Part shown: positions 9,786 to 42,240 of the stretch, one piece after another
Position numbering within the stretch: the first letter of the stretch is position 1
Layout of the letters: each line of letters starts with the position of its first letter
NCBI GenBank assembly: GCA_002269645.1
Contig: NIVC01000514.1
Span: forward strand, 124,001 to 188,000
DNA from: Macrostomum lignano
Lineage: Eukaryota
DNA: 64,000 nucleotides
Direction of reading: 5' to 3'
Translations under genes and position numbers: made by a program
The notes under the pieces: model-generated
The model's input: the letters and a program-made list of their open reading frames with translations, nothing else
The model's database searches: none
Told to the model about the DNA's origin: nothing

Positions 9786-10375
9786 CCACAGATAATAGAT
9801 ACAGGTATCGTCCTGCCTTCTTTCTTTGTGTTCAGTGCCATTAGGACATCGTCACCAGGGCCTGTGCGTTTGCTGCGACCCTGGTTGCTGACCTATTGTC
9901 TGCGCATTAGCGCGACAGTGGCTTGGCAAGCAACAGGGCTGGGTGCTGAGTCTCCCTTCTCGTATAGACAGGAGACAAAGCCGGCTGGTCAGTCTAGGGA
10001 CACAACAAAATGATTTTGAACTATTCATTCCATGCCTGCTTGTTATGGCTATGGCTTATGTAGAAATTGAATAAGGCTGAGGGCTGTCAATTTCAGATCT
10101 ATTAAATCTGAAATAAGAATTATATGAGCCTTCACTGAGACGCCTGCCATAACTTATATATTTGATTCAAAGTCTCTCTGATGCAATCACAGGCACAGAT
10201 AATAAAACACTAGATATTTCACTCTGCATTGAGTTAAGCCATTTTTGTGTTATTGTCTATGGCTCAAAAAAGTGTCTACTCTTTGGGTGAGCATCAGCGT
10301 GCGCATGGCTAGATAAATTGCTAGTTGCTCCAAAAATGAAATTTGACGCAAGGCACTGCCGTGCCTACGAGTGAC

Positions 10376-10975
10376 GAATACATGAAACTGTTGTCATATT
10401 TTGCTTATACATGAAACTGCTGTCATATTTTGCTGATACATGAAACTGCTGTCATATTTTGCTTATACATGAAACTGTTGTCATATTTTGCTTATACATG
10501 AAACTGCTGTCATATTTGGCTTATACATGAAACTGCTGTCATATTTTGCTTATACATGAAACTGCTGTTATATTTTGCTGATACATGAAACTGCTGTCAT
10601 ATTTTGCTTATACATGAAACTGTTGTCATATTTTGCTTATACATGAAACTGCTGTCATATTTTGCTTATACATGAAACTGCTGTCATATTTTGCTTATAC
10701 ATGAAACTGCTGTCATATTTTGCTTATACATGAAACTGCTGTCATATTTTGCTTATACATGAAACTGCTGTTATATTTTGCTGATACATGAAACTGCTGT
10801 CATATTTTGCTTATACATGAAACTGTTGTCATATTTTGCTTATACATGAAACTGCTGTCATATTTTGCTTATACATGAAACTGCTGTCATATTTTGCTGA
10901 TACATGAAACTGCTGTCATATTTTGCTGATACATGAAACTGCTGTCATATTTTGCTTATACATGAAACTGCTGTC
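10376..10975. repeat. 29-bp tandem repeat (atacatgaaactgctgtcatattttgctt), about 20 copies
   Basis: Visible near-identical units. Confidence 0.95.
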
Positions 10976-13533
10976 AGCAGTCGAATGCTGAGTATGGAGC
11001 TGTTGTCATGCATGTGTTTTGCTTATAAATGAAACAGTTATCAACCTCATATTAAAGCTCCAACTCTTAAGCCCTCAAGTTCCTTCGTTTTGACCATAAA
11101 TGGGAGTGCACTTAACTTTGATGTTTTGAAAGCTAGCCTAAGCTTAGCCTAAGCTTGAAAGCTTAGCGTAAGCTGACACGAAAACGACAATACATCACTT
11201 TTGCTACGTATTTTTAGATCGTTTTACGCATCCATGTTCGTTCACGCTACTAACCAAAGAGTAGTTGCAAAAATCTAAGCAAGAGTGAACTATCTAGGGT
11301 TATAGTATCCGTGACCACAACCCCAGCATGCAACACTGAGGAGGGGTAACGCCAAGCGTACACTTGACGGCGCTACACAAAACAGAGGGTGTAGGCAGGC
11401 ACACAACTAACCATGACAATGGTTAATGCTTAGTGGCGCCCACGAAATGATGAAACAGCACAGTTAGGTTTTAAATTTCTCGAGCGAGTGAATAGAATTC
11501 CTGGCATCACACTTAATCAAGCTTGAAACGCGTGGTGCTAGCTAGTGGTCCTTGCCAAAGATGATTAGTTAGACACTCAGCTACGTTAAACTTTCCACCC
11601 CGAAAGCAGTGGCAAACAATTAACAGCTCAAACTCTCCACTCTCTCCTCACCAGCCTAAGCAGGGGGACCTTTTACTCGAATTGAATCACCAAAGTTAAG
11701 ACAAGAACCGCGGGCGTGTTGTGGGCTGAGATCTGAGACCACTGGTTTAGGAAACGGACATCCAAAGCTGGAGTCCTGGAGTCCTGGAGCTGGAGCTGGG
11801 CCATGGAAAACACGCGAATTTCTTACAGAGAAACTTCACTGGGGACAAGCCAAAATGAAGAGTAGACTTAGGATTGCCTGGATCAGTCTGAAGTGGTCTG
11901 GCGATGCTGCAGTAGCGTAAGCTAGTATACTTTAGCTTCAAAATCACCCAATTAAAGGCGCAGGCGAAGTCGCACCTGACGAAGCCAAGGAACAGCGCAG
12001 ACGCCGCGAGACGCTGACAAAAAAGCAGGGCACGGCGCCTCTACTCGAATTGGATCCCGGAAGGATGAAGATGTTGGGCACTCAAGCCAACAGCCTTGCA
12101 TCACCATGATCGCTAATCGGGGTCAGTGGTCTTTCTTTATATATCAGTCTTTGCATTTGAAGCCACCTCCCTCAGTGCTTAATTGTACAACATTTTACCT
12201 GCATTTTCATTCAAAAGCAGCTCCTCTTTCGACAATGGGAACTTCATCTTCCACACTTCAAGCTTGGCATCTCTGAAACAACATCCACTTCAGACAAACT
12301 CCTTTTCATCATCATCGACAACTGAAAGTGAAGGTCAATTCTAACCTCAAGAAAATGATTCACTGTGGTCAAATTTGTACCAAATCTATACAGTTGTTCA
12401 TTAAAGCAGTGTACAATAAGAATCTCCTTTCTGTACGGATAGCTTCGCACCAAAGCAAACTAAAATGTTGGAAAACGAACTTACACTACAGAGATAGGCA
12501 CATGTCTAAAATATTAAAGACTTCACTTCCACTTTCGACAAAGTCCACTTCATATCAACAGTCTATGGTCCAGACCTACTGAAACCTCGATTCACTCTCG
12601 TCTAAGTGACGTCCATTAGACAGTCAACATGCACTTTAAGACAGGGACAAGACTTTATGCCATAGACAGCATAAAACCATACAATGTTTTGTGCAGACAG
12701 ATTTTCATCAGGAGACTGTATGAGCTCAATCTAGAAACCTTTAATCCCTCCCTGCACCATTTTACGTCTATTTCTACATCGTATCACTCTCTGCGATTCT
12801 GAGCCATGGGAGACAGCGAACTCTCCTTGTTCGAGGAACCTGGAGAAGAGAACGAAGAGAACGAACGAAGAGAATGAAGAGAACTGAAGAGAAGGAGCTG
12901 ATGCGAATTAGTGCTGTTTAACTGCCATTTGAAGATGCGAATGAATTCTTCTTGACTGGAGTTTTAGATGTTCAAGTTTTGACTTCCTTTTTTAATTTTG
13001 ATCCTTATAATAGGATCTGTTACTGTTTTGCTAATTTTTTCTAAATTATTCTTTGCTAGTTGATACTACTGGCCATATACTTCACAACAAAAGTAGTGCG
13101 AACGATTTTTAATTCGGATTCATAAAAAATGCGTGATTGAGCATTCTGTGTACATTCTGTGGTGCCGTAGGGTGCACTCAGCCCCCTGTCTATAATAAAA
13201 AATGGCCAACGATGGGCTCGGTTTACCATCATCAATACCGGGTGAAGAATTCATAGCCATACGATGTTCATTTGAGCGCGTTTTTAAAGAAGCGCAACAA
13301 ACCCGAACCGGACCTCAATCAAATTTGTTGTGAATCCAGGAACAGAAAAAAAGAGAGAAAGTTGGCTACAGCTTTCAGCATAGATTATAAGCTCTCTTCA
13401 CGTCAAGCCGATCTCATTTGGCGTGTCCAAGCAAGGAGGCAGAAGCGAATCAAAGCAAGGGAAAAGTTGAATGGTCAGTGTAACTCGGCCAAAGATATCG
13501 CAAAGGTGCCGTTATTGCATAGCTACTCATTTT

Positions 13534-15324
13534 CTAGTTTTCTGGCATCCCCTTCTTGTCGCCCAGCTCCACCTCGCTGCAGTCCGGCGTGCCCGAGCTG
13601 CTGCCCATCGGTGGCGCGGGCCTCACGCGGATGATGTTGCTGGAGCTTCGCTGCCCCCCGGTCTTGGTGATCAGGTTGTACAGCAGCTCGACGAGCTCGC
13701 ACAGGCTCAGCAGGCTGCAGCCGAGGTAGATGCCCGCAGTGCCGCCAATGTCGGCGATGAACGTCTGCAGAGAGTAGCCGGGCGACAGCCGGATCTGCGA
13801 GCTGCGCGACTGCTGGCTGCGCAGCGTCACCTCCAGGCCCGAGCGGGAGAAGAACTTGCTGGCCAGACCTTCTGCAGCAGAGATGTCAGGCTCTTCTATT
13901 ATAAGGCGGTAAATTATATTGGAATATATTGCACTCCAAGCGGGTCTCGATACATAGGGAGAGCCATCCAATATGGGCTTCATGATGCCCGTAACAACCC
14001 GGATCTGCCCGTTCTCGTTGGGCCAGTTCGCGCTGGAGGTGCTGGTCTCGTACTTCCGTGACACGCACAGCTGCCTGCTCTGGCACAGCTGCTGGAAGTC
14101 GCTCAGCGCGGCCGTGTCAGCTGTGAACGCCTGCAGGAGGTTCGACTCGATCTGAGACTCGTTCAGGCCGCTCGCATTCAGGCAGAAGCGCAGGTGCCTG
14201 AACTGCCACGGCAGCGGGTTCACGTACGGACTGCAGCCGCCGTTCACAGACAGCTGCCGAGCGAACTCTGAGAAGTAGCAGAAGCTGTTGCTGTAGCCGA
14301 ACGCGTACGCCGAGCCGTCGTACGGATTGACGAACTGCACGTCAGGAGCCTCCGTCAGGCAGCGTCCGCCGTACGCCTCGGGCTCCTTCTTGATGCTCTG
14401 CATGCTGAGCCCGATGCTGTAGGACCTGCCGGGAGCGAGTAGGAAGTTGGTCACGAACCTGCTCGGGTACTCGCCTCGAGGAGGCAGGTACAGCCTCATT
14501 CCCATCGGCCTGTCGATCTCGTAGGGCGAGTCCAGGTCCCAGTCGTACACGAGTATTTGTATTTTGTTGTACAGCGGGACGGTCACGCTCATTACATGTG
14601 AATACACGCTGACATTCAATGCGTCATCAAAGTCGGTGAAGTGCGGATCCAGAATGAACTGGAAGCTGATCTCCGAGTTGACCTTGCTCAGCTCAGCGAG
14701 TCTCTGCTCAGTCAGCTCGACCTTGAGACACTTGAGGTGATTCGGGTGGTAGAAGGGTCTGAGGGAGACGCCCGACTTGCTGTCGTTCTTCAGTACCGTC
14801 TGCTGCTCCTTGTGAGCGAGATGGTCCACCAGCAAGCTGTACGACATTGACTGGATGGCGGACTTCAGTCTGTACAGCTTCATCTGCTCGATTTGAGACT
14901 CGGTGGCGTTCGCGAGCGACGAGTTGAGCAGCCGCTGCAGCGCCAAGTCGAAGGTGGCGAGCGAGGCGGTCATCCTTGCGTTGATGTCGGTGACGACCTC
15001 GCTGGCGAGCGTGACGGAGTAGGTGCCCGACACCTGGACATTGTTGCAGAAGTACACGTCAGGAAACTGGAAGTCCACAGCCTCGGCCTCGTAGGAAGTG
15101 CTGACCTCGCCTCTGACGAGCTTGCTTGTGAAGCCGTGCATGCTGAAGGTGAACACAGCGAGCAGGCCCAGGAAGGCCAGCAGCCAGCAGAGCTTGATGT
15201 AGAGCGGCCTCTGGCCCGCCAGCCTGCTGAGCCCGTGGGCTGTGGTCTCGCTGGCAGCCGCGGCCAGGACCTGCGTCAGCAGCGCTCCGGTGCTGGGGGT
15301 CTCGTCCGTTGCGGCAGTTGGCAT
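13534..15324 (-). CDS. DEG/ENaC (ASIC/ENaC family) channel subunit, 596 aa, intronless
   Basis: N-terminal TTAHG (HG motif), TM1 LCWLLAFLGLLAVFTF, FPDVYFCN, Cys-rich thumb, TM2 FIADIGGTAGIYLGCSLLSLCELVELLY with GxS filter (GCS). Confidence 0.92.
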   Translation of the reverse strand: MPTAATDETPSTGALLTQVLAAAASETTAHGLSRLAGQRPLYIKLCWLLAFLGLLAVFTFSMHGFTSKLVRGEVSTSYEAEAVDFQFPDVYFCNNVQVSGTYSVTLASEVVTDINARMTASLATFDLALQRLLNSSLANATESQIEQMKLYRLKSAIQSMSYSLLVDHLAHKEQQTVLKNDSKSGVSLRPFYHPNHLKCLKVELTEQRLAELSKVNSEISFQFILDPHFTDFDDALNVSVYSHVMSVTVPLYNKIQILVYDWDLDSPYEIDRPMGMRLYLPPRGEYPSRFVTNFLLAPGRSYSIGLSMQSIKKEPEAYGGRCLTEAPDVQFVNPYDGSAYAFGYSNSFCYFSEFARQLSVNGGCSPYVNPLPWQFRHLRFCLNASGLNESQIESNLLQAFTADTAALSDFQQLCQSRQLCVSRKYETSTSSANWPNENGQIRVVTGIMKPILDGSPYVSRPAWSAIYSNIIYRLIIEEPDISAAEGLASKFFSRSGLEVTLRSQQSRSSQIRLSPGYSLQTFIADIGGTAGIYLGCSLLSLCELVELLYNLITKTGGQRSSSNIIRVRPAPPMGSSSGTPDCSEVELGDKKGMPEN

Positions 15325-17433: not shown

Positions 17434-28595
<11,162 letters not shown>

Positions 28596-28679
28596 GCGAC
28601 TCAACGGCCAATCCCGCCTGATTTGGACAGTCTTTGACTCCTAGCAACTGACTTTTGGCTCGCTAGGACTCATGAACTT

Positions 28680-29048
28680 TCGGGACTCTTCGGCTCTCAG
28701 TGCGTGACCAGGGAATTCACTGGGACTCTTCGGCTCTCAGTGCGTGACCAGGGAATTCACTGGGACTCTTCGGCTCTCAGTGCGTGACCAGGGAATTCAC
28801 TGGGACTCTTCGGCTCTCAGTGCGTGACCAGGGAATTCACTGGGACTCTTCGGCTCTCAGTGCGTGACCAGGGAATTCACTGGGACTCTTCGGCTCTCAG
28901 TGCGTGACCAGGGAATTCACTGGGACTCTTCGGCTCTCAGTGCGTGACCAGGGAATTCACTGGGACTCTTCGGCTCTCAGTGCGTGACCAGGGAATTCAC
29001 TGGGACTCTTCGGCTCTCAGTGCGTGACCAGGGAATTCACTGGGACTC
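28680..29048. repeat. 40-bp perfect tandem repeat (tgggactcttcggctctcagtgcgtgaccagggaattcac), about 9 copies, downstream of the iGluR-A stop
   Basis: Identical units with no spacers. Confidence 0.95.
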
Positions 29049-29249
29049 TGCTTGAAATGCGTGGCAAAGATTTGTTTAAAACAATCTCGCACATTGTCTG
29101 CCCAGCCATTGAATAATTAACCGCTGCTTTGACTGCGCAGATAAATCTGTAGCTTTGAGAAATCCAGACCCACCGCTGCTGCGTCTGCTCACATTTCTGG
29201 CTGAGAAGCGCGTCAGATGTTGTCTACTCTTTAATAACCAATCAAGGAT

Positions 29250-30990
29250 TTGATGGGAATGGGTGATGAGGAATGGGTGGTGGGGAATGGGTGATGGGAA
29301 TGGGTGATGGGGAATGGGTGGTGGGTGATGGGGAATGGGTGATGGGTGATGGGAATGGGTGATGGGGAATGGGTGGTGGGTGATGGGGAATGGTTGATGG
29401 GTGATGGGAATGGTTGATGGGGAATGGGTGGTGGGAATGGGTGGTGGGGAATGGGTGATGGGAATGGGTGATGGGGAATGGGTGGTGGGTGATGGGGAAT
29501 GGGTGATGGGTGATGGGAATGGGTGATGGGGAATGGGTGGTGGGAATGGGTGGTGGGGAATGGGTGATGGGAATGGGTGATGGGGAATGGGTGGTGGGTG
29601 ATGGGGAATGGGTGATGGGTGATGGGAATGGGTGATGGGGAATGGGTGGTGGGAATGGGTGGTGGGGAATGGGTGATGGGAATGGGTGATGAGGAATGGG
29701 TGGTGGGGAATGGGTGATGGGAATGGGTGATGGGGAATGGGTGGTGGGTGATGGGGAATGGGTGATGGGTGATGGGAATGGGTGATGGGGAATGGGTGGT
29801 GGGAATGGGTGATGGGAATGGGTGATGGGGAATGGGTGGTGGGTGATGGGGAATGGGTGATGGGTGATGGGAATGGGTGATGGGGAATGGGTGGTGGGAA
29901 TGGGTGGTGGGAATGGGTGATGGGGAATGGGTGATGGGGAATGGGTGATGGGGAATGGGTGATGGGGAATGGGTGATGGGGAATGGGTGATGGGGAATGG
30001 GTGGTGGGTGATGGGGAATGGGTGATGGGTGATGGGAATGGGTGATGGGGAATGGGTGGTGGGAATGGGTGATGGGGAATGGGTGATGGGGAATGGGTGA
30101 TGGGGAATGGGTGATGGGGAATGGGTGATGGGTGATGGGTGATGGGAATGGGTGATGGGGAATGGGTGGTGGGAATGGGTGGTGGGAATGGGTGATGGGG
30201 AATGGGTGATGGGGAATGGGTGATGGGGAATGGGTGATGGGGAATGGGTGGTGGGTGATGGGGAATGGGTGATGGGTGATGGGAATGGGTGATGGGGAAT
30301 GGGTGATGGGGAATGGGTGGTGGGGAATTGGTGATGGGGAATGGGTGGTGGGAATGGGTGGTGGGAATGGGTGATGGGGAATGGGTGATGGGGAATGGGT
30401 GGTGGGGAATGGGTGGTGGGGAATGGGTGATGGGGAATGGGTGGTGGGTGATGGGGAATGGGTGATGGGTGATGGGAATGGGTGATGGGGAATGGGTGAT
30501 GGGGAATGGGTGGTGGGGAATGGGTGGTGGGGAATGGGTGATGGGAATGGGTGATGGGAATGGGTGATGGGCGATGGGGAATGGGTGATGGGTGATGGGG
30601 AATGGGTGATGGGTGATGGGAATGGGTGATGGGGAATGGGTGGTGGGTGATGGGGAATGGGTGATGGGTGATGGGAATGGGTGATGGGGAATGGGTGATG
30701 GGGAATGGGTGGTGGGGAATGGGTGATGGGGAATGGGTGATGGGAATGGGTGATGGGAATGGGTGATGGGCGATGGGGAATGGGTGATGGGTGATGGGGA
30801 ATGGGTGATGGGTGATGGGAATGGGTGATGGGGAATGGGTGATGGGGAATCGGTGTTGAGGAATCGGTGATGAGAAATCAGTGATGGGGAATCGGTGATA
30901 GGGAATCGGTGATAGGGAATCAGTGATGGGGAATCAGTGATGGGGAATCAGTGATGGGGAATCAGTGATGGGGAATCAGTGATGGGGAAT
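29250..30990. repeat. G-rich satellite (GGGAATGGGTGATG variants), dense G-quadruplex motif
   Basis: Continuous GGG runs separated by 2-5 nt over about 1.7 kb. Confidence 0.95.
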
Positions 30991-31423
30991 CGGTGATAGG
31001 GATCGCAATAAGTGATGGGGAACGGGTCCTGGTCAATCCATCCGTGGCCCAGAAGCGGCCCGCATTCCCAGTACCTGCCGACTGCCATTAGAGTATTCAA
31101 ACAAAGGGCAGCTCGCGGTCCTCTGAAACTCATTTGTCTCCCCCCATCAGAGCCGTGGAAAATTCCGTCACCGGTTGCTGTCAGCCGGAGAGGCACTCCG
31201 CCGCTCATGCGGGAGTCGGGGCGCCCGCCAGCAATTAACGCAAAATGCATTTGCTCAGGCGCCCGGTGGGCTATAAACATTGGGGAGCGGCTAATGGCTT
31301 CTGGCCAAGGAGTTCTGGGCCTGCAGTCTGGGGTTGGGGAACTCCTGCGAAACCTCATTGCCACTAATTAGGGTAGGGGCAGGAGAGGGCACCTGCCCCC
31401 TGCCATAGCGATCGGCGCTTAAA

Positions 31424-32709: not shown

Positions 32710-32835
32710 TCCGTGACGCAGAGACTCCGTGACGCAGAGACTCCGTGACGCAGAGACTCCGTGACGCAGAGACTCCGTGACGCAGAGACTCCGTGACGCA
32801 GAGACTCCGTGACGCAGAGACTCCGTGACGCAGAG
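32710..32835. repeat. 16-bp tandem repeat (ccgtgacgcagagact)
   Basis: Visible units. Confidence 0.9.
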
Positions 32836-33068
32836 ACTCGGCCCTCTCGAGTCTGAGGATGAGCTTTTAAGGAGAGCCCTACTCCAGACTCTGCTCCCAG
32901 ATCTCCTTGACCCAGCGCGCTCCCCTATCCGCCAGCATCTCTGCCGGGTGACAGGTGCATCCATAATTTATCCCAATGGGATAATAATCCGCGTCCCAGC
33001 CCCAGTCAATAGGAAAAATTCCCAGATCCCCCCCCCCCGATCTCCAGTCCGGCGCCACCGGCCAGGCC

Positions 33069-33075
33069 TATAAAA
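33069..33075 (+). promoter_or_regulatory. Putative TATA box of iGluR-B
   Basis: TATAAAA about 130 nt upstream of the ATG at 33206. Confidence 0.45.
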
Positions 33076-33205
33076 CTGGCTGCGCTGAGCTGGGGCTCAC
33101 TGACTCTGAGCTCACTGACTCTGTGCTCACCGACTCTGAGCTCACTGACTCTGTGCTCACCGACTCTGAGCTCACTGACTCGCCACCGCCCTGCACCGAG
33201 ACGTC

Positions 33206-36200
33206 ATGAGCTGCCGACTGCTGACGCTGCTGCTGCTCGCCTGCTGCTGCTGCCTGGCCGCATCCCAGGCCGGAGCGGCCGACCTTGAGAACCGAGAGCT
33301 CCGCGTTGTCACCATCACGGTGAGCTGGGAGACCCTCAATGCTGGATTGCGTATTGAGTCTGGGTTAACGGTTGCCAAATCCCAGAGTCCAGAACATCTC
33401 AGAATTATAGTGTCAGGGCGTTTATTCCCCGTAGGCCCATTAACTATTAATACTGAGCCCTGAACCCTGAACCCTGTATGTACCCTAAATCCTTAACCCT
33501 GAACTCTGAACCCTAAACCCTAAACGCTGAAGCCTTGAATCTTGAAATCTGAACCCTGGACCCTAGACCCTAGACCCTAGACCCTAGACCCTGGGCCCTG
33601 GATCCTGAAATCTGAACCCTGGACCCTGAACCCTGAAGTCTGAACACTGAACCCTGGACCTTGAACTCTAAACCCTGAACCCTGAACCCTGGACCCTAGA
33701 CCCTGGACCCTGGACCCTGGACCCTGGACCCTGAACCCTGGACCCTTGGTTTGAAGAGTAAAGGTTTTCAAAGGTTTCAAGGTTTCAAACCAAAGCTGAA
33801 CCCTGAACCCTGTACCCTGAACCCTGAAACCTGTACCCTGGACCCTGTACCTTAAATCCTGAACCCTGAACCCTGTACCCTGTACCCTGAACCCTGGACC
33901 CTGGACCCTGGACCCTGGACCCAACCCTGAACCCTGAACCCTGAACCCTGAATCCTGAAATCCGAACCCTGAACCCTGGACCCTAGACCCTGAGCCCGGG
34001 AACCCTGAACCCGAACCCTGTATCCTGAACTCTAAACCCTGAACCCTGACCTGAGCCTTGAGCCCTTTGTATTGAACCCTGGTCCAGTCCCCAACTGTGA
34101 ACCCTAAAATCTTAATTCGAACACTGTAAACTAAACCTAAGCGCTAGCCACGCCCCATCCGATAAACGCTACGTGCAGCAAAAGCCCTTCGTGATGCGGG
34201 TGGAAGGCTCGGAACCGGTCAGATACGTGGGCTTCTACATCGACCTGCTGAACCTCCTGCAGCGGGAGCTGAAATTTCGCTACCGAATCTACGAGGTAGC
34301 CGACAGCAGGTTCGGATCCCGCTCGCCGAAGGGGGTCTGGAACGGCCTGATGGGCGACATCGTGAACAAGGTGGGTGATGGAAGTAAGAGAAGATGCGAA
34401 CGATGCGAGTCTGTGACCGCAGCGGGGTTCGGTTGGAGTGTTTTATCAAGTTGATCGACTTTGAGTTTAGAGGAAAATTCTGCTCAAGTCTGGCGTGCGA
34501 GTCACTGGGTGACAGTCTGTGTGAGCCACTCGGTGACAGTCTGTGTGAGTCACTCGGTGACAGTCCGTGTGAGTCACTGGGTGACAGTCCGTGTGAGCCA
34601 CTCGGTGACAGTCTGTGTGAGCCACTCGGTGACAGTCTGTGTGAGTCACTCGGTGACAGTCTGTGTGAGTCACTGGGTGACAGTCTGTGTGAGTCACTCG
34701 GTGACAGTCTGTGTGAGTCACTCGGCGACAGTCTGTGTGAGTCACTCGGTGACAGTCCGTGTGAGTCACTGGGTGACAGTCCGTGTGAGCCACTCGGTGA
34801 CAGTCTGTGTGAGCCACTCGGTGACAGTCTGTGTGAGTCACTCGGTGACAGTCTGTGTGAGTCACTGGGTGACAGTCTGTGTGAGTCACTCGGTGACAGT
34901 CTGTGTGAGTCACTCGGTGACAGTCTGTGTGAGTCACTGGGTGACAGTCTGTGTGAGTCACTCGGTGACAGTCTGTGTGAGTCACTGGGTGACAGTCTGT
35001 GTGAGTCACTCGGTGACAGTCTGTGTGAGTCACTCGGTGACAGTCTGTGTGAGTCACTCGGCGACAGTCTGTGTGAGTCACTGGGTGACAGTCCGTGTGA
35101 GCCACTCGGTGACAGTCTGTGTGAGCCACTCGGTGACAGTCTGTGTGGATCACGGGGTGACAGTCTGTGTGAGTCACTCGGTGACAGTCTGTGTGAGCCA
35201 CTCGGTGACAGTCTGTGTGAGCCACTCGGTGACAGTCTGTGTGAGTCACTCGGTGACAGTCTGTGTGAGTCACTGGGTGACAGTCTGTGTGAGTCACTCG
35301 GTGACAGTCTGTGTGAGTCACTGGGTGACAGTCTGTGTGAGTCACTGGGTGACAGTCTGTGTGAGTCACTCGGTGACAGTCTGTGTGAGTCACTCGGCGA
35401 CAGTCTGTGAGTCACTGGGTGACAGTCTGTGTGAGTCACTGGGTCACAGAAGCCAGCCACCTGTCCCGCAGACGGCAGACCTGACCCTGGCCACTCTGCG
35501 CATCATGCCCAAAAGGCTGGAAGCCGTGGACTTCACGCTGCCGGTCTCCTCCTCGGGCCTGTCGCTGCTGTACAAGGAGGCGGCCTCGCAGACCTTGCAG
35601 ACCTCGCAGGCCGCCCTGCTGCTGCAGCCGTTCGCCGCCTCGGTGAGTTCTGCGGTTCACTGGACACTGACCGAATCACTCGGCCCTAGCTAGCTGTGAC
35701 TGGGGCCCCGATCAGCAGACAGGTGCCACCCAAAGGTCCTGCTATCTGGAAGTTTCCAAAGGTCCCGAAGGTCTCCTCACAGGCATTCAACATTGTGCAA
35801 AATCATCTTGTTTAACTTTCCCCATAGACCTGGGTGCTGCTACTGCTGCTGTACATCTTCTTCTTCCACCTTTTTCTCGCCTCCCGGAGTAGGTGGCACC
35901 CAAGTTTCCCGGACCCTTACTCGCCGCAAATTCTCTCATGTCTCGCCATATTCGTCGTTGCCAGCCACCTCTTGCAATATCTGCCCTCTTTCCTCTTGCT
36001 TTTGTACATTCTCGCTACCATCCTCGGTGCTTCCTCATTCGTCGTTGGTCTCTCGCTTATCTGGTCGTTCGTTTCGCATCCCTTTCTGAGTCTTGCATAA
36101 TTTGATTTGCTTATCCATCTCTTGCAGCTGTTGCATTCTCTCCTGGTTCCCTCTACTCTGCCTCCTGTGCACCATTTCTCATGGTTTTTCCTCGTCGCTT

Positions 36201-39200
36201 CCGTCTTAAAAACGCTATCACACCTCTTGCAGTCCATTCTTATTCCGGTCTCTTGTCTGTGCATACGTTCCTGTGGATGGCTAGTCCTTCTCTTGATCTG
36301 CATATTTTCTCGCATCCGTCCTCCCAGCACCTGAAGCCAATGAGTTCGTTTTCCTCCATTGGTAGTTCTCTTTGTCCGTTCTGGTTTTCTGGTTCTTCTT
36401 CGGCTCTTCCCTTGGTTTTACTTCTCTCTTGTTCAATCGTATCCCACTCGGCGTCCCGATCTTTGATGATTTCCCTCCACTTCTCTTTTGTCCGCGAGCT
36501 GTCCGACTCTGAGTGGGTCGAGTTTCTAATGAGTTTTCTCCAGTACGTAATTATCGTAGTCATCCTTTTCTTTGGTCTTTTCATTGATTCTAATCTCTTG
36601 TTCCATCCCATGACACAGATTTTCGTTATGCTGGAGTCTGGCAATCTCCACGTGGCCTAGTCTCCTCCAGTGTGCCGTTTCGATTTTTCTTTGAATGCTT
36701 TTTATCCCGATTTCTCGTCTCACGTCCCACATATTAACCTGTCTTTCTTCCATCTCCCGCAGAGGTTCTTTAGTTTTTCTGCTCCAAATATATCTGTAGT
36801 ACTTACCCATAATTCTTTGGAGTTGATTGATCTAGCTTTTTTTGAAGTGTCTAGCTCCTGCGTTGAACGTGAGCGTGCTTTCGACGCAGGCTTCGATCTC
36901 TCTCGCTTGAGTGCGTTCGTTAGTCTGGTTCTTCTGAGTCGCTTCTTAACTTTTGCCCCGGATGTCTTCTTTGTCTCCGAGCCACAGCCCCAGCATTCGG
37001 ATTCTATTGCTCTCTGCTGTTCCTACTGTTGCTGTCTCTTCTTTCGCGTCGTTCGTTCTTTCTTGTAGCCATCCCAAGACTGTCTTCACCGTCGTTTCTT
37101 CTTCGATTTCTTTCTTTCCGCCAATCACCGCGGTATCATCCGCGAACAGGGAGCAGGTGATCCGCGTGGTGGTTGATTCTTCCGTGAACTTATAGTTTCT
37201 CTGTGGTGGTCAGTGTTTTCCTGGCAGATAGGTCCATTCGATCCCAACTTCTTCGCCTCTGTTTGCTGCTGTGGTCTTTCTAGCTGTTTCTGCCGCTCTC
37301 ATGACCGCCTGATGGTAGATGTTAAAAAGTACGGGTGAGGTCGCGCATCCTTCATGTAATCCCCTTTGTGAGAAAATATGTGACTATCCTCATCCTCCGT
37401 GTGTACTTTGTATGCGGTGTGCTCATGTAGGCCCTTTAGTTTCTCGATCATTTTGTCTGGCATCTCGTGGTGTGCGAGTAGTCGCCAGAGTGCTGGCTTG
37501 TTTACTCTCGGATATTGAAGTACTTATGGTTTTCTCGGGGTGGCCTGTTAGGTCTTTGAAACCCACCGCTGCCACCAGTGAAGTACTTATGGTTGTCTCG
37601 GGGTTTCTCCTGCTGTCCAGCGCAGTGACTTGGGCTCTCCGTCTTCTCACTCGGAAGCCTTCTTAACTCTTAGTAGCGTAGGTAGTGCTGCCACCAGTTC
37701 CTTCAGGTCTCGGCCTTCGATGAGGTGAGCTTCCCGTCGGAACGAAATAACGAAGTCAACGAACTCGAAGGCGTCTCGTCAGCAGCACCTGCCGGGCTTG
37801 GTTGGTATGGGAGGGTTGAGTTAGCCTCTCGTAGGCTTGGGGTTTGCTTTAGTAGGGTCTCAGTCAGACCAGCACAAGCAGATTTAGTGTACGCAAAGAG
37901 GGGACTTAGTTCAGTCAATAGCGCACGCGGGCTCTTAGAAGTTTAGAGGCAAGCAAAGACTCCGGCAAAGACTCCTTGACGGAAACAAGGAGGAGAGGGG
38001 TCCTATTTATAGCCGGGATTCTCCCGCGCACAAGACCTCGTGACTTGTTCTATTTTTAGAACTGACGTCACTTGAGGTCTCGGGGCAGGGTCTCAGTGCG
38101 CGCAAGACCTCGTGACTCGTTCTATTTTTAGAACTGACGTAACTTGAGGTCTCCGGCCAGAGTACACGCGGCTGTGACTCAGTTGCTATTTTTAGCAACA
38201 TGAGTCACTCCTCTCCTTAGAGAAAGGAGGGGTCCGAAAGCACGTGATTCTCCCGGTAAACAGGGCCAACGAGTGCAGTAAACATGTTTACTGCACTTTA
38301 AGACTCCAAGAACGCAAGATCTGTCATGTGACTTGCTCACAAGACAGAGGAAAACGGGACGGGAACGAAACAGAGACAGCCCACAGCAGAGAAGCCGAGT
38401 GCTGAGAACAGAGACGCAGAAGGGCAGAACAGGCCAAGGGCAGCAACAGACAGCCAGGGGGGCGGGAAGCTGACCAGCGGCAGACAGCAACCCTGGGCGA
38501 GGGCGAGGGAGACTGCTGACAAAGGGGGACGCCAAACACTAAACTAGCGGCTCACTACAATATGCTTTTTTTAGATCCAGCAATTTAGCCACGGTATCGC
38601 TGTCTCCGCTAACTTCATCTTTCCCATTCTCTGCATTTCCGCTGATCTTTTGGTCAGTTTCGCGTCTTCCTGTAGTCTGAGGATGATCTGAGTGGCGTCC
38701 ATCGTCGACCTGTCCCGCCTGAAACCCGCTTGATTCTCGTCCAGGCAGTTGATCCCTTCCGCCCACCTGTTGATTCGGGTTGCGATAATCTTGCCAAGAA
38801 CCTACTTGTCATCGGTAGTAGGCAGACACCCCGATAATTGTTTAGGTCTTTTTTGTCTCCTTTTTTGTGTAACGGGATGATGAGTCCTAGCTTTTGTCCT
38901 TCTCCCCATTTCGTCGCCGATTCCGTCCACAGTCTGGTTATTTCAATGAGACATTCTTCTCTTACTGTTTCACACGCTGTCTTGATGTAGATCAGTCTTA
39001 ATTCGTCTTCTCCTGGTGCGCCGTTTTTCATTTTGTTCAGTTCTGTCGTGCCGTGCAGTTGGCATAAAGAAACTCAGGGTTTATTTTAACTAGCAAGTAG
39101 CCTATTTAATAATAATGACTCGAGCAGTGGCTGAGAGAACACCAAAATAGAGTCACGTGATGACAATCAACTACGTACAACTACATGGAAGCTTAGGGGT

Positions 39201-41944
39201 ATGGCCAGTCAGAGCGAAGGGAGAGGAAAGAATGGTGTGCACGTACGATGCACGTACATAGCATAAGTTAGTTAGTTAGCCAGTGCCTAGAGCTCAGCGC
39301 TCCGGAACCACAAGTTCTCTTTCGAATTCCTTCCAGGTGATTGGATCCATTAAGGCCTGGTTTGCTTGCTCTCTAAGTTTCAACATTCAGCATTGTGCAA
39401 AATTATCTTGTTTTACTCTCCCCATAGACCTGGGTGCTGCTACTGCTGGTGTACATTATCTACCTCGGCCTGGCCTTCGTCCTCTTCCTGCTGTCCCCCT
39501 ACGAACTGGGCGGTAGCGCCGGCAGCGCCTCCTCGACCGTCGCCAAAGCGAGGAAAGCCGGCTGCGGAGCCTTCGCGTTCATCACTGGCGGCCTCTTCAT
39601 CCAGGGTGAGTATGCAGTCGTGGATTTTTAACCTGTGATGCTAAATTTGTGATGTTTAATCTGTGGTGTTTAATCTGTGATGTTTAATCTGTGATGTTTA
39701 TCTGTGATGTTTAATCTGTGATGTTTAATCTGTGATGTTTATCTGTGATGTTTATCTGTGATGTTTATCTGTGATGTTTAATCTGTGATGTTTAATCTGT
39801 GATGTTTAATCTGTGATGTTTATCTGTGATGTTTAATCTGTGGTGTTTAATCTGTGATGTTTATCTGTGATGTTTAATCTGTGATGTTTAATCTGTGATG
39901 TTTAATCTGTGATGTTTATCTGTGATGTTTATCTGTGATGTTTATCTGTGATGTTTAATCTGTGATGTTTAATCTGTGATGTTTAATCTGTGATGTTTAT
40001 CTGTGGTGTTTAATCTGTGATGTTTATCTGTGATGTTTAATCTGTGATGTTTAATCTGTGATGTTTATCTGTGATGTTTATCTGTGATGTTTATCTGTGA
40101 TGTTTATCTGTGATGTTTATCTGTGATGTTTAATCTGTGATGTTTAATCTGTGATGTTTAATCTGTGATGTTTAATCCGTGTTCTGCGAATTCCCGAAAC
40201 ACTCAGGCTTCGCGCGCACCCCGAAGGCCCCCTCGGCCCGCGCCTTGGCCTTCGCCTGGTGGCTGTTCGCCCTGGCCACCGCCTGCTGCTACACGGCCGG
40301 CCTGGCGACCCGCCTGATGGCCGGCCGCCCGACGGCTTCCGCCAAGTTCGGCAGCCTGCAGGAGCTGATGGCGCAGTCAAAAGTGCCTTACGGAGTGCTG
40401 GCCGGCGGCTCCACCGCCACCATGCTGGCTGTGAGTAACCTGGCGGGCCCTGGACCTGATATCCTGAATCTGACACCCTGGATCTGACACCCTGGATCTG
40501 ACACCCTGGATCTGACACCCTGGATCTGACACCCTGGATCTGACACCCTGGATCTGACACCCTGGATCTGACACCCTGGATCTGACACCCTGGATCTGAC
40601 ACCCTGGATCTGACACCCTGGATCTGACACCCTGGATCTGACACCCTGGATCTGACACCCTGGATCTGACACCCTGGATCTGACACCCTGGATCTGACAC
40701 CCTGGATCTGACACCCTGGATCTGACACCCTGGATCTGACACCCTGGATCTGACACCCTGGATCTGACACCCTGGATCTGACACCCTGGATCTGACACCC
40801 TGGATCTGACACCCTGGATCTGACACCCTGGATCTGACACCCTGGATCTGACACCCTGGATCTGACACCCTCGATAGTGCTCTAAAACTATTAAGCACGG
40901 ACGTCCTGCCCGGAAAATTTCAGAACTCCAACATTCCCGAGTTCCTGGCCGTCAACGCCTTCCTGAGCCGCAATCCGAGCTGGAACGTCAAGAGCACTGA
41001 GGACGGACTGCAGCGCGTGAGGAAGGGCGGCTACGTCTGGATTGCCGAGGGCATCACCGCCGACTACCACGGCATGACCGAGTGTGAGCTGGTGTCCTCG
41101 CCCACCGGCCTCGCCACCGTGGACATCGGCCTGGCCATTGCCAAGGGTACGTCAGCGGGAGCTTAGACACCTGCAGACACCTGCAGACACCCTCAGACAC
41201 CTGCAGACACCCTCAGACACCTGCAGACACCCTCAGACACCTGCAGACACCCTCAGACACCTGCAGACACCCTCAGACACCTGCAGACACCCTCAGACAC
41301 CTGCAGACACCCTCAGACACCTGCAGACACCCTCAGACACCTGCAGACACCCTCAGACACCTGCAGACACCCTCACACACCTGCAGACACCCTCAGACAC
41401 CTGCAGACACCCTAAAACACCTTCGCAAATACCCTAGCAGGCACCCTGACAGACATCCTCCCCGATGCGATCCCGCAGGCTCCAACCTGAAGCAGGCATT
41501 CGACGCGGCCATCCTGAAGGTCAAGGCCAACGGCGAGCTGGACAGCATGAAGAGCCGCTGGTGGCAGAAAAACGACGACCAGTGCGCCGCCAAGGCCTCC
41601 GACTGGCCCAGCCCGCTGGCCCCTGGCGACCTGCTCGGCCTCTACCTGGTGCTGCTGCTCGGCTGCCTCGCCGCCTTCGTTGCCCTGCCCTTGGAATTTA
41701 TGCTGAAGGCTGCCGGACTGCCCTTTTGCGGGCGAGGCCAGCAGGTCTGAGAGCTCTGCTTGGCAATTCCGTCCCTTGCATTCAATTTCAAGTTTTCTCC
41801 GCCACTCCAAATGCCCCGCAGGCCGAGCAGCCGGCCGCCGCCGCCGCCGCTGCCCAGGATAAGCCAGGCAAAGACGCCGGTGCCGTTGCCACAGCCGGAT
41901 CGGAGGAGAAGCAGCCGGAGCCGGAGTCCAAACCTCTGGTTTAA
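33206..41944 (+). CDS. Divergent ATD-less ionotropic glutamate receptor-like subunit (iGluR-B), 8 exons, about 496 aa
   Basis: Exons 33206-33319, 34179-34370, 35472-35642, 39428-39605, 40207-40430, 40924-41146, 41479-41744, 41822-41944 (1491 nt, all GT-AG, phases compatible). Signal peptide then LENRELRVVTI, GFYIDLL, WNGLMGDIV, ADLTLATLRIMPKRLEAVDFT, M1, FITGGLFIQG, WWLFAL..CYTAGLATRLM, GGST, WIAEG, RWW..C, M4. Confidence 0.88.
33450..34060. repeat. Heptamer minisatellite (gaaccct/ggaccct), telomere-like
   Basis: Visible CCCTGAA/CCCTAAA/CCCTGGA units in iGluR-B intron 1. Confidence 0.85.
34495..35440. repeat. 24-bp intronic tandem repeat (gtgacagtctgtgtgagtcactcg)
   Basis: Visible units; source of four long ORFs. 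Confidence 0.95.
35784..35856 (+). repeat. Left copy of a 73-bp direct repeat (LINE target-site duplication) containing the 3' splice site and start of the iGluR-B M1 exon
   Basis: Matches 39384-39456 with 5 mismatches (offset exactly 3600). Confidence 0.85.
37471..38559 (-). mobile_element. Solo LTR (about 1.09 kb) inserted in the LINE RT
   Basis: TG...CA termini; splits RT between DLKKAY and MPDKM; TATAAATA on the minus strand at 38004-38011; duplicated enhancer-like block; no TSD visible. Confidence 0.65.
39044..39312 (-). mobile_element. Solo LTR (269 bp) of the Gypsy family at 61675-64000
   Basis: TGTCGTG...ACCACA flanked by a perfect 5-bp TSD AGTTC (39039-39043, 39313-39317); aligns to 61675-61939. 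Confidence 0.92.
39384..39456 (+). repeat. Right copy of the 73-bp target-site duplication, continuing into the intact M1/pore exon
   Basis: Acceptor CCATAG|ACC at 39427/39428; exon open to the donor at 39606. Confidence 0.85.
39630..40175. repeat. 13-14 bp intronic tandem repeat (ctgtgatgtttaat)
   Basis: Visible units. Confidence 0.95.
40470..40870. repeat. 14-bp perfect intronic tandem repeat (tggatctgacaccc)
   Basis: Visible units. Confidence 0.95.
41165..41410. repeat. Intronic tandem repeat (cagacacctgcagacaccct)
   Basis: Visible units. Confidence 0.9.
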
Positions 41945-41984
41945 CTTTGCTAGCACTAGACTGTTGCTATAACAGCCTAGCAAC

Positions 41985-42240
41985 ACCAGAGCACCAAGGA
42001 GCATAGCAACACCAGAGCACCATGAGCACAGCAACACCAGAGAATCATAAGCACAGCAACACCAGAGAATCATGAGCACCGCAACACCAGGGCACCATGA
42101 GCACAGCAACACCAGAGCACCATGAGCACAGCAACACCAGAACACCATGCATGAGCACAGCAACACAAGAGCACTATGAGCACAGCAACACCAGAGCACC
42201 ATGAGTACCGCAACACAAGAGCACCATGAGCACAGCAACA
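41985..42240. repeat. Tandem repeat downstream of the iGluR-B stop (agcaacaccagagcaccatgagcac)
   Basis: Visible units. Confidence 0.85.

Follow-up and report, generated by a model that had tools for sequence, protein, structure and literature searches.

Ionotropic glutamate receptor (iGluR) subunits that lack the amino-terminal domain (ATD) are known in many animals. Vertebrate kainate-binding proteins (KBPs), the 'glutamate receptor U1' type with members in frog, chick and goldfish, run from a signal peptide directly into the S1 segment of the ligand-binding domain (LBD) and continue through M1-M3, S2, M4 and a short tail within about 460-490 amino acids (aa). KBPs are reported to bind kainate and to give no homomeric currents. 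Together with the ionotropic receptors (IRs), they represent natural experiments on assembly and gating without the domain that normally directs assembly. In this work we analysed a gene with the same layout as the KBPs, iGluR-B, in a 64,000-nucleotide stretch (the window) of the Macrostomum lignano genome (assembly GCA_002269645.1, contig NIVC01000514.1, positions 124,001 to 188,000, forward strand). It is probable that iGluR-B is a functional M. lignano gene with its own TATA/CCAAT promoter, that it encodes an ATD-less AKDF-type subunit and is one of at least two paralogues, and that the ATD was lost before iGluR-B and its paralogue B2 split. The protein is already deposited in GenBank and UniProt as uncharacterised, and no established view is changed by the finding. 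A literature search with the gene identifiers found no paper mentioning the gene, and a search on flatworm iGluRs and the ATD found no relevant work; PMC6307864 and PMC12226733 name neither flatworms nor the ATD. M. lignano is the only flatworm with routine transgenesis, and its two-paralogue ATD-less subfamily, each member duplicated by polyploidy, would be tractable for functional study.

iGluR-B was rebuilt from open frames and splice signals as eight exons on the plus strand at positions 33206-41944 of the window. The coding sequence of 1491 nt encodes 496 aa with a single terminal stop, all seven introns are GT-AG and all 14 splice sites are intact. The original prediction, a model's note on the window that preceded this analysis, had read an intact frame of about 496 aa, in agreement with the 496 codons plus stop found here. 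Exon 1 (33206-33319) has 38 codons for the signal peptide and the first S1 strand, DLENRELRVVTIT, and ends in a phase 0 donor. Its translation consists of MSCRLLTLLLLACCCCLAASQAGA, a single Ala and then DLENRELRVVTIT, in full MSCRLLTLLLLACCCCLAASQAGAADLENRELRVVTIT: a basic n-region and a Leu/Cys-rich core are followed by direct entry into the first S1 beta-strand. The core is followed by SQA/G, which we take to be the small-residue cleavage motif of a signal peptide (von Heijne rule). Only 25 of the 496 residues stand ahead of S1, and the prediction of a signal peptide running straight into S1 was exact apart from one dropped Ala.

Exons 2 (34179-34370; QKPFVMRVEG...GDIVNK) and 3 (35472-35642) continue S1, the latter with LATLRIMPKRLEAVDF, in which Arg takes the place of GluA2 Thr480 and the counterpart of Arg485 is unchanged. 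Exon 4 (39428-39605) encodes M1 and the M2 pore loop (...GGLFIQ/G), with Ile at the Q/R site and a phase 1 donor. Exon 5 (40207-40430) encodes FARTPK, M3, whose gate motif is CYTAGLATR, and the beginning of S2 (GGST). In exon 6 (40924-41146) lie the conserved S2 Glu, which corresponds to GluA2 E705, and the first of the two LBD disulfide cysteines; exon 7 (41479-41744) completes S2, with the second Cys, and adds M4 and the beginning of the cytoplasmic tail. Exon 8 (41822-41944) encodes an Ala/Glu/Pro-rich tail and the C-terminus KPLV, followed by the stop codon. Two promoter elements were read from the plus strand, a CCAAT box at 32972-32976 and a TATAAAA at 33069-33075, the latter 131-137 nt 5' of the ATG, where a TATA box about 130 nt above the gene had been predicted. 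Between the TATA box and the ATG, TRF detected 2.9 copies of a 30-nt tandem repeat (33095-33181, plus strand), probably within the 5' untranslated region (5'UTR).

A Pfam scan of the iGluR-B protein detected Lig_chan-Glu_bd (PF10613) at residues 31-138 (E = 1.2e-28) and Lig_chan (PF00060) at residues 159-430 (E = 9.8e-16), while ANF_receptor (PF01094) was not found; the ANF_receptor versus Lig_chan scan proposed with the original prediction thus returned only the Lig_chan-type domains. The best sequence match in PDB was GluK5 (E = 3.9e-60), followed by GluK3, GluK2 and GluA1/2. The PDB alignments begin at about residue 400-410 of the solved chains, which is the start of S1, and that with GluK5 extends through M4. 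The AlphaFold2 model of the homeologous protein, which is 97% identical, has a mean pLDDT of 82.6 and matches the chains of GluD2, GluA1-3 and GluK2 over the LBD and transmembrane domain (LBD-TMD) at Foldseek E values of about 1e-28. Its helices at 155-178, 193-212, 224-254 and 413-442, the last being M4, include M1, the re-entrant M2 and M3. By its LBD, channel and M4, iGluR-B is a eukaryotic AKDF-type iGluR subunit.

The DNA upstream of iGluR-B was searched for a hidden ATD. The full-length kainate-type gene iGluR-A (18482-28600, plus strand) lies in tandem on the same strand, with its ATD exons at approximately 18.5-23.6 kb, its LBD and transmembrane part at 23.69-27.37 kb and its tail extending to about 28.6 kb. 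A gap of 4.6 kb, mainly minisatellite, separates the two genes. The ATD of iGluR-A is spread over about eight exons, as predicted. When these exons or three full-length ATD-bearing homologues were used as tblastn queries, no plus-strand ATD-like match was obtained within 27.4-33.2 kb. When the non-repetitive part of the intergenic DNA was translated in the three plus frames, with stops masked as X, Pfam gave nothing at E <= 10; as a positive control, the same scan detected two of five iGluR-A ATD exons singly (E = 1.3e-10 and 0.004). The predicted absence of the whole ATD was therefore borne out both in the protein, which has no ANF_receptor domain, and in the upstream DNA, where no relic was found. 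Rfam and tRNA scans of 27-43 kb gave no matches.

The iGluR-B protein is 97% identical to BOX15_Mlig007793g1 of M. lignano (493 aa), encoded on NIVC01000151.1 (L001), which is colinear with the window over 20-46 kb at 87-96% nucleotide identity. This homeologous locus bears an equivalent tandem pair, a gene for a 988-aa product annotated with ANF_receptor and Lig_chan, the counterpart of iGluR-A, and the 493-aa ATD-less gene about 3.5 kb downstream. The GenBank model of the latter has eight exons with exactly the structure rebuilt for the window copy. Since the GenBank annotation of Mlig_3_7 is based on an RNA-seq-guided transcriptome assembly (PMC5730564), the ATD-less structure has transcript support in the homeologue.

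A HMMER search of 1.84 billion representative proteins returned one close relative, P0122, which is 40-43% identical to iGluR-B; all others were at or below 35%, and no member of the clade was found among these representatives outside Macrostomum-related samples. P0122 is encoded by a 1625-nt transcript contig (L002) from another sample; a literature search found no paper on the SRA run of P0122. This contig has an in-frame ATG 99 nt upstream of the called start, from which a signal peptide, MARSILTSPAMGLLLLLILLDSTALLVQADGSR, leads into S1, and an in-frame TAA lies further upstream of that ATG, so P0122 is ATD-less at the mRNA level. P0122 is 72-75% identical to B2 (BOX15_Mlig028300g1, 519 aa), an M. 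lignano protein that is itself about 40% identical to iGluR-B. B2 is located on a separate scaffold (L003, NIVC01001072.1, positions 10001-14831), where it adjoins an acetyltransferase gene and no iGluR. Its exon 1 encodes a signal peptide and the start of S1, and its six introns match the first six of iGluR-B in position and phase. The dN/dS between B2 and P0122 was about 0.21. The C-terminal (K/R)PLV is kept in all clade members, B2 and P0122 included, and this conservation supports the use of the 77-nt last intron of iGluR-B. A polypyrimidine-AG acceptor was also observed 4 nt before the B2 ATG, which suggests spliced-leader trans-splicing or an intron in the 5'UTR.

Trees and identity comparisons were built on phmmer-trimmed LBD-TMD segments, using neighbour-joining (NJ) with 100 bootstraps; IR reference sequences (IR25a, IR8a and tuning IRs) lay outside the tree data set. 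iGluR-B, its homeologue, B2 and P0122 were monophyletic in 100/100 bootstraps. Judged by gene structure, the ATD was already absent in the common ancestor of iGluR-B and B2: its loss would predate their split because the unlinked B2 shares the exon 1 design and six intron positions and phases. With only 40% identity between the two, this split should be far older than the polyploidisation. The original prediction had proposed an independent loss that followed duplication of the neighbouring gene, but the unlinked B2 and its orthologue indicate that the loss was neither recent nor specific to this locus.

A public M. lignano model conflicts with a separate ATD-less gene. P0270 (UniProt A0A1I8G9G6; 1271 aa, window positions ~21.7-41.9 kb) joins iGluR-A to iGluR-B, and polycistronic precursors make up approximately 7% of the transcriptional units of M. 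lignano (PMC5730564), so that iGluR-B could be the 3' part of a read-through transcript whose mature protein has an ATD. We regard this as extremely improbable. P0270 reads through the tandem repeats and the TATA box of iGluR-B (...GQAYKTG...), drops the ATG by means of a tiny artificial intron and omits half of exon 2, and a fusion protein would carry the entire LBD-TMD in duplicate. The RNA-seq-based GenBank annotation has two separate genes, and the conserved promoter, the in-frame signal peptide and the upstream stop in L002 favour a separate start. A0A1I8G9G6 was also considered as an ATD-bearing isoform and was rejected as a likely prediction artefact on account of the repeats, the TATA box, the artificial intron and the half-skipped exon 2. 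It could mislead surveys of domain architecture.

The coding sequences of the window copy and its homeologue differ by 13 non-synonymous and 17 synonymous changes, giving a dN/dS of 0.26 with a dS of 0.046. The non-synonymous deficit was significant (binomial p = 3.7e-4), and the only coding indel is three codons long and in frame. A dN/dS near 1, which the original prediction had named among the results that would refute it, was thus not seen between the homeologous copies. Over the approximately 230 nt that precede the ATG and contain the CCAAT and TATAAAA elements, identity to the homeologous locus is about 99% except for an indel of one 30-nt repeat unit, of which the homeologue has one fewer; the surrounding non-coding DNA is 87-93% identical, well below the promoter. 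iGluR-B is therefore intact and under purifying selection.

Intron 3 carries several insertions. An imperfect direct duplication of about 77 nt was found by sequence alignment, and its downstream copy (39382-39458) contains the real intron 3 acceptor and the start of exon 4. In the upstream copy (35782-35858, plus strand), a decoy acceptor (ag at 35826-35827) stands together with the initial ~30 nt of exon 4. The decoy is located 185 nt from the exon 3 donor, and splicing there (at 35828) would run into a stop at 36098. At the homeologous locus this upstream copy is shorter by 88 nt. Flanked by the two copies, a degenerate non-LTR (long terminal repeat) retrotransposon with a reverse transcriptase remnant occupies 35916-39100 on the minus strand; its frame-stitched translation hits RVT_1 at E = 7.8e-19, while single minus-strand open reading frames in the intron had no Pfam match, the reverse transcriptase being visible only in the stitched composite. 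Both the retroelement and the decoy acceptor are shared with the homeologous locus. The arrangement looks like a retrotransposon insertion at the intron/exon boundary that was neutralised when a long target duplication regenerated the acceptor downstream. A solo-LTR-like insertion of 1044 bp (37516-38559) with TG...CA ends and a 4-bp ATAT target duplication is found in the window copy but not at the homeologous locus, and probably represents a solo LTR gained after the genome duplication and nested in the older LINE fragment.

The longer duplicate of the decoy acceptor and exon 4, together with the private solo LTR, would be expected of an incipient pseudogene whose frame is open only because the duplication was recent, and M. 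lignano is indeed a recent polyploid with much redundancy (PMC5730564). Such decay of the window copy is nevertheless very unlikely in our view: 496 codons are open with every splice site intact, non-synonymous changes are significantly depleted, the single coding indel keeps the frame and the promoter is conserved. The homeologue, which is expressed, carries both the retroelement and the decoy acceptor as well.

Three points weigh against our reading of iGluR-B as a functional, separately transcribed ATD-less receptor gene. The ATD-less 5' end at the mRNA level comes from L002, an orthologue of the paralogue, and from the annotation of the homeologue, and not from the window copy. The decoy acceptor and the extra solo LTR in intron 3 could lower productive splicing. 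Finally, the ligand, channel activity and partners of iGluR-B are deduced from residues alone.

A different private minisatellite is present in the 5'UTR, in introns 1, 2, 4, 5 and 6, in the 3' flank and in the intergenic spacer, and copy numbers differ between the window and the homeologous locus. Within the introns the arrays are located at 33453-34049 (intron 1, period 7), 34495-35449 (intron 2, period 24), 39623-40181 (intron 4, period 14), 40448-40875 (intron 5, period 14) and 41165-41422 (intron 6, period 20). That of the 3' flank is at 41979-42240 (period 25), and those of the spacer are at 27370-27998, 28682-29049, 29251-31002 and 32710-32839, with periods of 18, 40, 14 and 16, respectively.

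The origin of the iGluR-B clade was examined through introns and phylogeny. Of the seven iGluR-B introns, six coincide with iGluR-A introns in both residue and phase (0, 0, 0, 1, 0 and 1). With introns marked by a slash, the junctions in iGluR-B and iGluR-A are VVTIT/QKPF and VTTVE/DAPF (intron 1), VNK/TADL and IDK/KADL (intron 2), AAS/TWV and SPT/VWS (intron 3), IQ(G)/FAR and QQ(G)/SEI (intron 4), TMLA/NSN and QFFK/MAK (intron 5), and AK(G)/SNL and TT(G)/SPY (intron 6). The seventh, past M4, has the same phase and is offset by about three residues in an unalignable tail, so the predicted match of all seven held for six positions, with the last shifted. The last 13 codons of iGluR-B exon 1 are homologous to the 3' end of the iGluR-A linker exon that carries the end of the ATD. 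In iGluR-A, the intron matching intron 5 of iGluR-B has an apparent GC donor at 25595/25596 (TTCAAG/gcgagg) and would be GC-AG; no in-frame GT was seen there ahead of the stop, and the old UniProt model has another junction.

These shared introns are consistent with a flatworm tandem duplicate of the iGluR-A ancestor that lost its ATD exons and evolved fast, with B2 as a later dispersed copy. The tandem, same-strand adjacency in both homeologous loci points the same way, as does the confinement of the clade to Macrostomum-related samples among the 1.84 billion representatives. iGluR-A, whose protein sequence was taken from the fused model P0270, is also the best raw match of iGluR-B outside its clade (33.1% over the LBD and TMD). 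However, iGluR-A ranked only 17th of 105 for rare residues shared with iGluR-B, showing no excess. Its high raw identity is therefore attributable to a sequence close to the consensus, with identities to canonical kainate-type receptors that average 46% and reach 60%. iGluR-B was never its sister in the NJ bootstraps, B2 adjoins no iGluR, and the intron positions in common may date back to the ancestor of all AKDF genes. The original prediction of a neighbour-derived duplicate was accordingly not upheld by the trees or the rare residues, and we consider such an origin possible but short of probable. Its description of iGluR-B as strongly divergent was correct: mean identity to canonical receptors is 30%, and the protein forms a separate long branch.

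Alternatively, the clade may be part of an old lineage of KBP-like AKDF receptors without an ATD that extends across the Bilateria; in that case no ATD loss was specific to flatworms, and the position next to iGluR-A is either incidental or goes back to very early times. Complete receptors of 425-530 aa that run from signal peptide to S1 were found in Tubulanus, Lineus, Sepia, Haliotis, Gigantopelta, Owenia, Ptychodera, Glandiceps, Branchiostoma and Ascaphus. In 79/100 NJ bootstraps the first clade enclosing iGluR-B was made up to at least 75% of other ATD-less receptors. A pore signature is also shared, a hydrophobic Q/R site followed by QG[FY]xxxP[KR] (iGluR-B LFIQGFARTPK, Sepia LTWQGFERTPR, P0235 LCWQGFDRTPK), and iGluR-B and the ATD-less receptors have a degenerate SYTANLAAF in common. 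On the other hand, all of these are long branches and the grouping may be due to long-branch attraction; the highest support for any single sister of the clade was 35%. Where they depart from the canonical consensus, ATD-less receptors match iGluR-B at 0.14 versus 0.18 for canonical sequences, and mean identity of iGluR-B to ATD-less receptors (28.4%) is not above that to ATD-bearing ones (29.6%). We hold this origin, too, as a tentative possibility.

Several ligand-contacting residues are kept in iGluR-B (GluA2 numbering): the equivalents of Arg485, of Ser654-Thr655 (the Ser-Thr of GGST) and of Glu705, as well as both LBD cysteines. R117 (numbering of the homeologue protein) and E332 are invariant in the receptor alignment. 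Binding of an alpha-amino acid is probably preserved in iGluR-B, since the Arg that contacts the carboxylate, the Ser-Thr pair and the Glu that contacts the amino group have been kept. Arg stands at the Thr480 position in iGluR-B (residue 112 in the window protein as in its homeologue), B2 and P0122 (xLRIx versus xLTIT), and the Tyr450 equivalent in iGluR-B is Phe. At the Q/R site iGluR-B has Ile and B2 has Val. The M3 gate reads CYTAGLATR in iGluR-B (5/9 match to SYTANLAAF) and CYIGNMGSV in B2. The third Ala of SYTANLAAF, which we take to be the residue altered in the mouse Lurcher GluD2 mutant, is Thr in iGluR-B, and Ser and Pro in B2 and P0122, Thr being specific to iGluR-B. From these residues we infer a ligand-gated channel subunit with an altered pocket, pore and gate. 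The Arg at the Thr480 position and the changes in pore and gate provide concrete hypotheses that can be addressed by mutation.

The signal peptide would be cleaved, after which the subunit would join a tetrameric cation channel. By analogy with KBPs and tuning IRs, assembly would rely on contacts of the LBD and TMD. A heteromeric or modulatory role is plausible, although this is speculation. A further reading is that the Mlig007793/Mlig028300 clade is a flatworm-specific, independent analogue of insect IRs, with a non-glutamate ligand or constitutive (leak) gating, whose members would partner ATD-bearing receptors, for example iGluR-A, in a chemosensory or modulatory role. The clade-conserved Arg at Thr480, the hydrophobic Q/R site and the Lurcher-like Thr in the iGluR-B gate are the features behind this reading, which we consider unlikely.

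Compared with described receptors, iGluR-B resembles iGluR-A and GluK1-5 in the LBD-TMD fold, in six intron positions and phases (iGluR-A) and in its top PDB matches, GluK5, GluK3 and GluK2. It differs from them in lacking the ATD and in having Ile instead of Gln at the Q/R site, CYTAGLATR instead of SYTANLAAF and TLRIM instead of PLTIT. iGluR-A nests among the kainate receptors, whereas iGluR-B (identity <=33%) does not. Bacterial GluR0 also has no ATD. GluR0 lacks M4 and has a K+-channel-type selectivity filter, whereas iGluR-B has an M4 (helix 413-442 of the AlphaFold2 model) and a eukaryotic AKDF-type pore loop.

Protostome IRs are similar to iGluR-B in having no Pfam ATD and a divergent gate, and one of the three glutamate-contacting positions is substituted in iGluR-B (Thr to Arg). 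By analogy, iGluR-B would be expected to need an ATD-bearing co-receptor, as protostome IRs do. Divergent IRs are usually more distant from kainate/AMPA receptors than iGluR-B is (GluK5, E ~1e-60). Most IRs have a short N-terminal region of about 200 aa without ATD homology before S1 (PMC2924276, Croset et al. 2010), where iGluR-B has just the signal peptide. Among known ATD-less receptors the original prediction had rightly listed KBPs and GluR0, and it omitted the protostome IRs and the unnamed ATD-less AKDF-like receptors considered below.

With regard to the KBPs, the 'glutamate receptor U1-like' protein of the frog Ascaphus truei (XP_075460993.1; P0151/P0271) is about 31% identical to iGluR-B, and both are hydrophobic at the Q/R site (VTLQG versus LFIQG). 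KBPs keep the canonical Thr in xLTIT, where the iGluR-B clade has Arg. With the frog sequence joining the clade's sister group in only 11/100 bootstraps, orthology is at most tentative.

Receptors running from signal peptide to S1 are scattered over at least seven phyla and are not discussed in iGluR classifications (e.g. PMC6307864). They include the nemertean proteins of Tubulanus (XP_074659201.1) and Lineus (XP_064648822.1), those of the molluscs Sepia (CAE1143465.1 cluster), Haliotis (XP_046377034.2) and Gigantopelta (XP_041347567.1), those of the annelid Owenia (CAH1792027.1) and of the hemichordates Ptychodera (XP_070563525.1) and Glandiceps (XP_077981297.1), and amphioxus (Branchiostoma) receptors. 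The Lineus longissimus model (P0123, 989 aa) joins a pair of complete ATD-less iGluR units in head-to-tail order, both with a signal peptide of their own, which implies that annotation merged what are tandem ATD-less iGluR genes in this nemertean. The nemertean, mollusc, annelid and hemichordate receptors are 28-31% identical to iGluR-B, keep the Thr480 equivalent and have no derived residues in common with it beyond chance. They resemble it in the signal peptide leading straight to S1, in a length of 425-520 aa, in the hydrophobic Q/R site with QG[FY]xxxP[KR] and in the degenerate SYTANLAAF.

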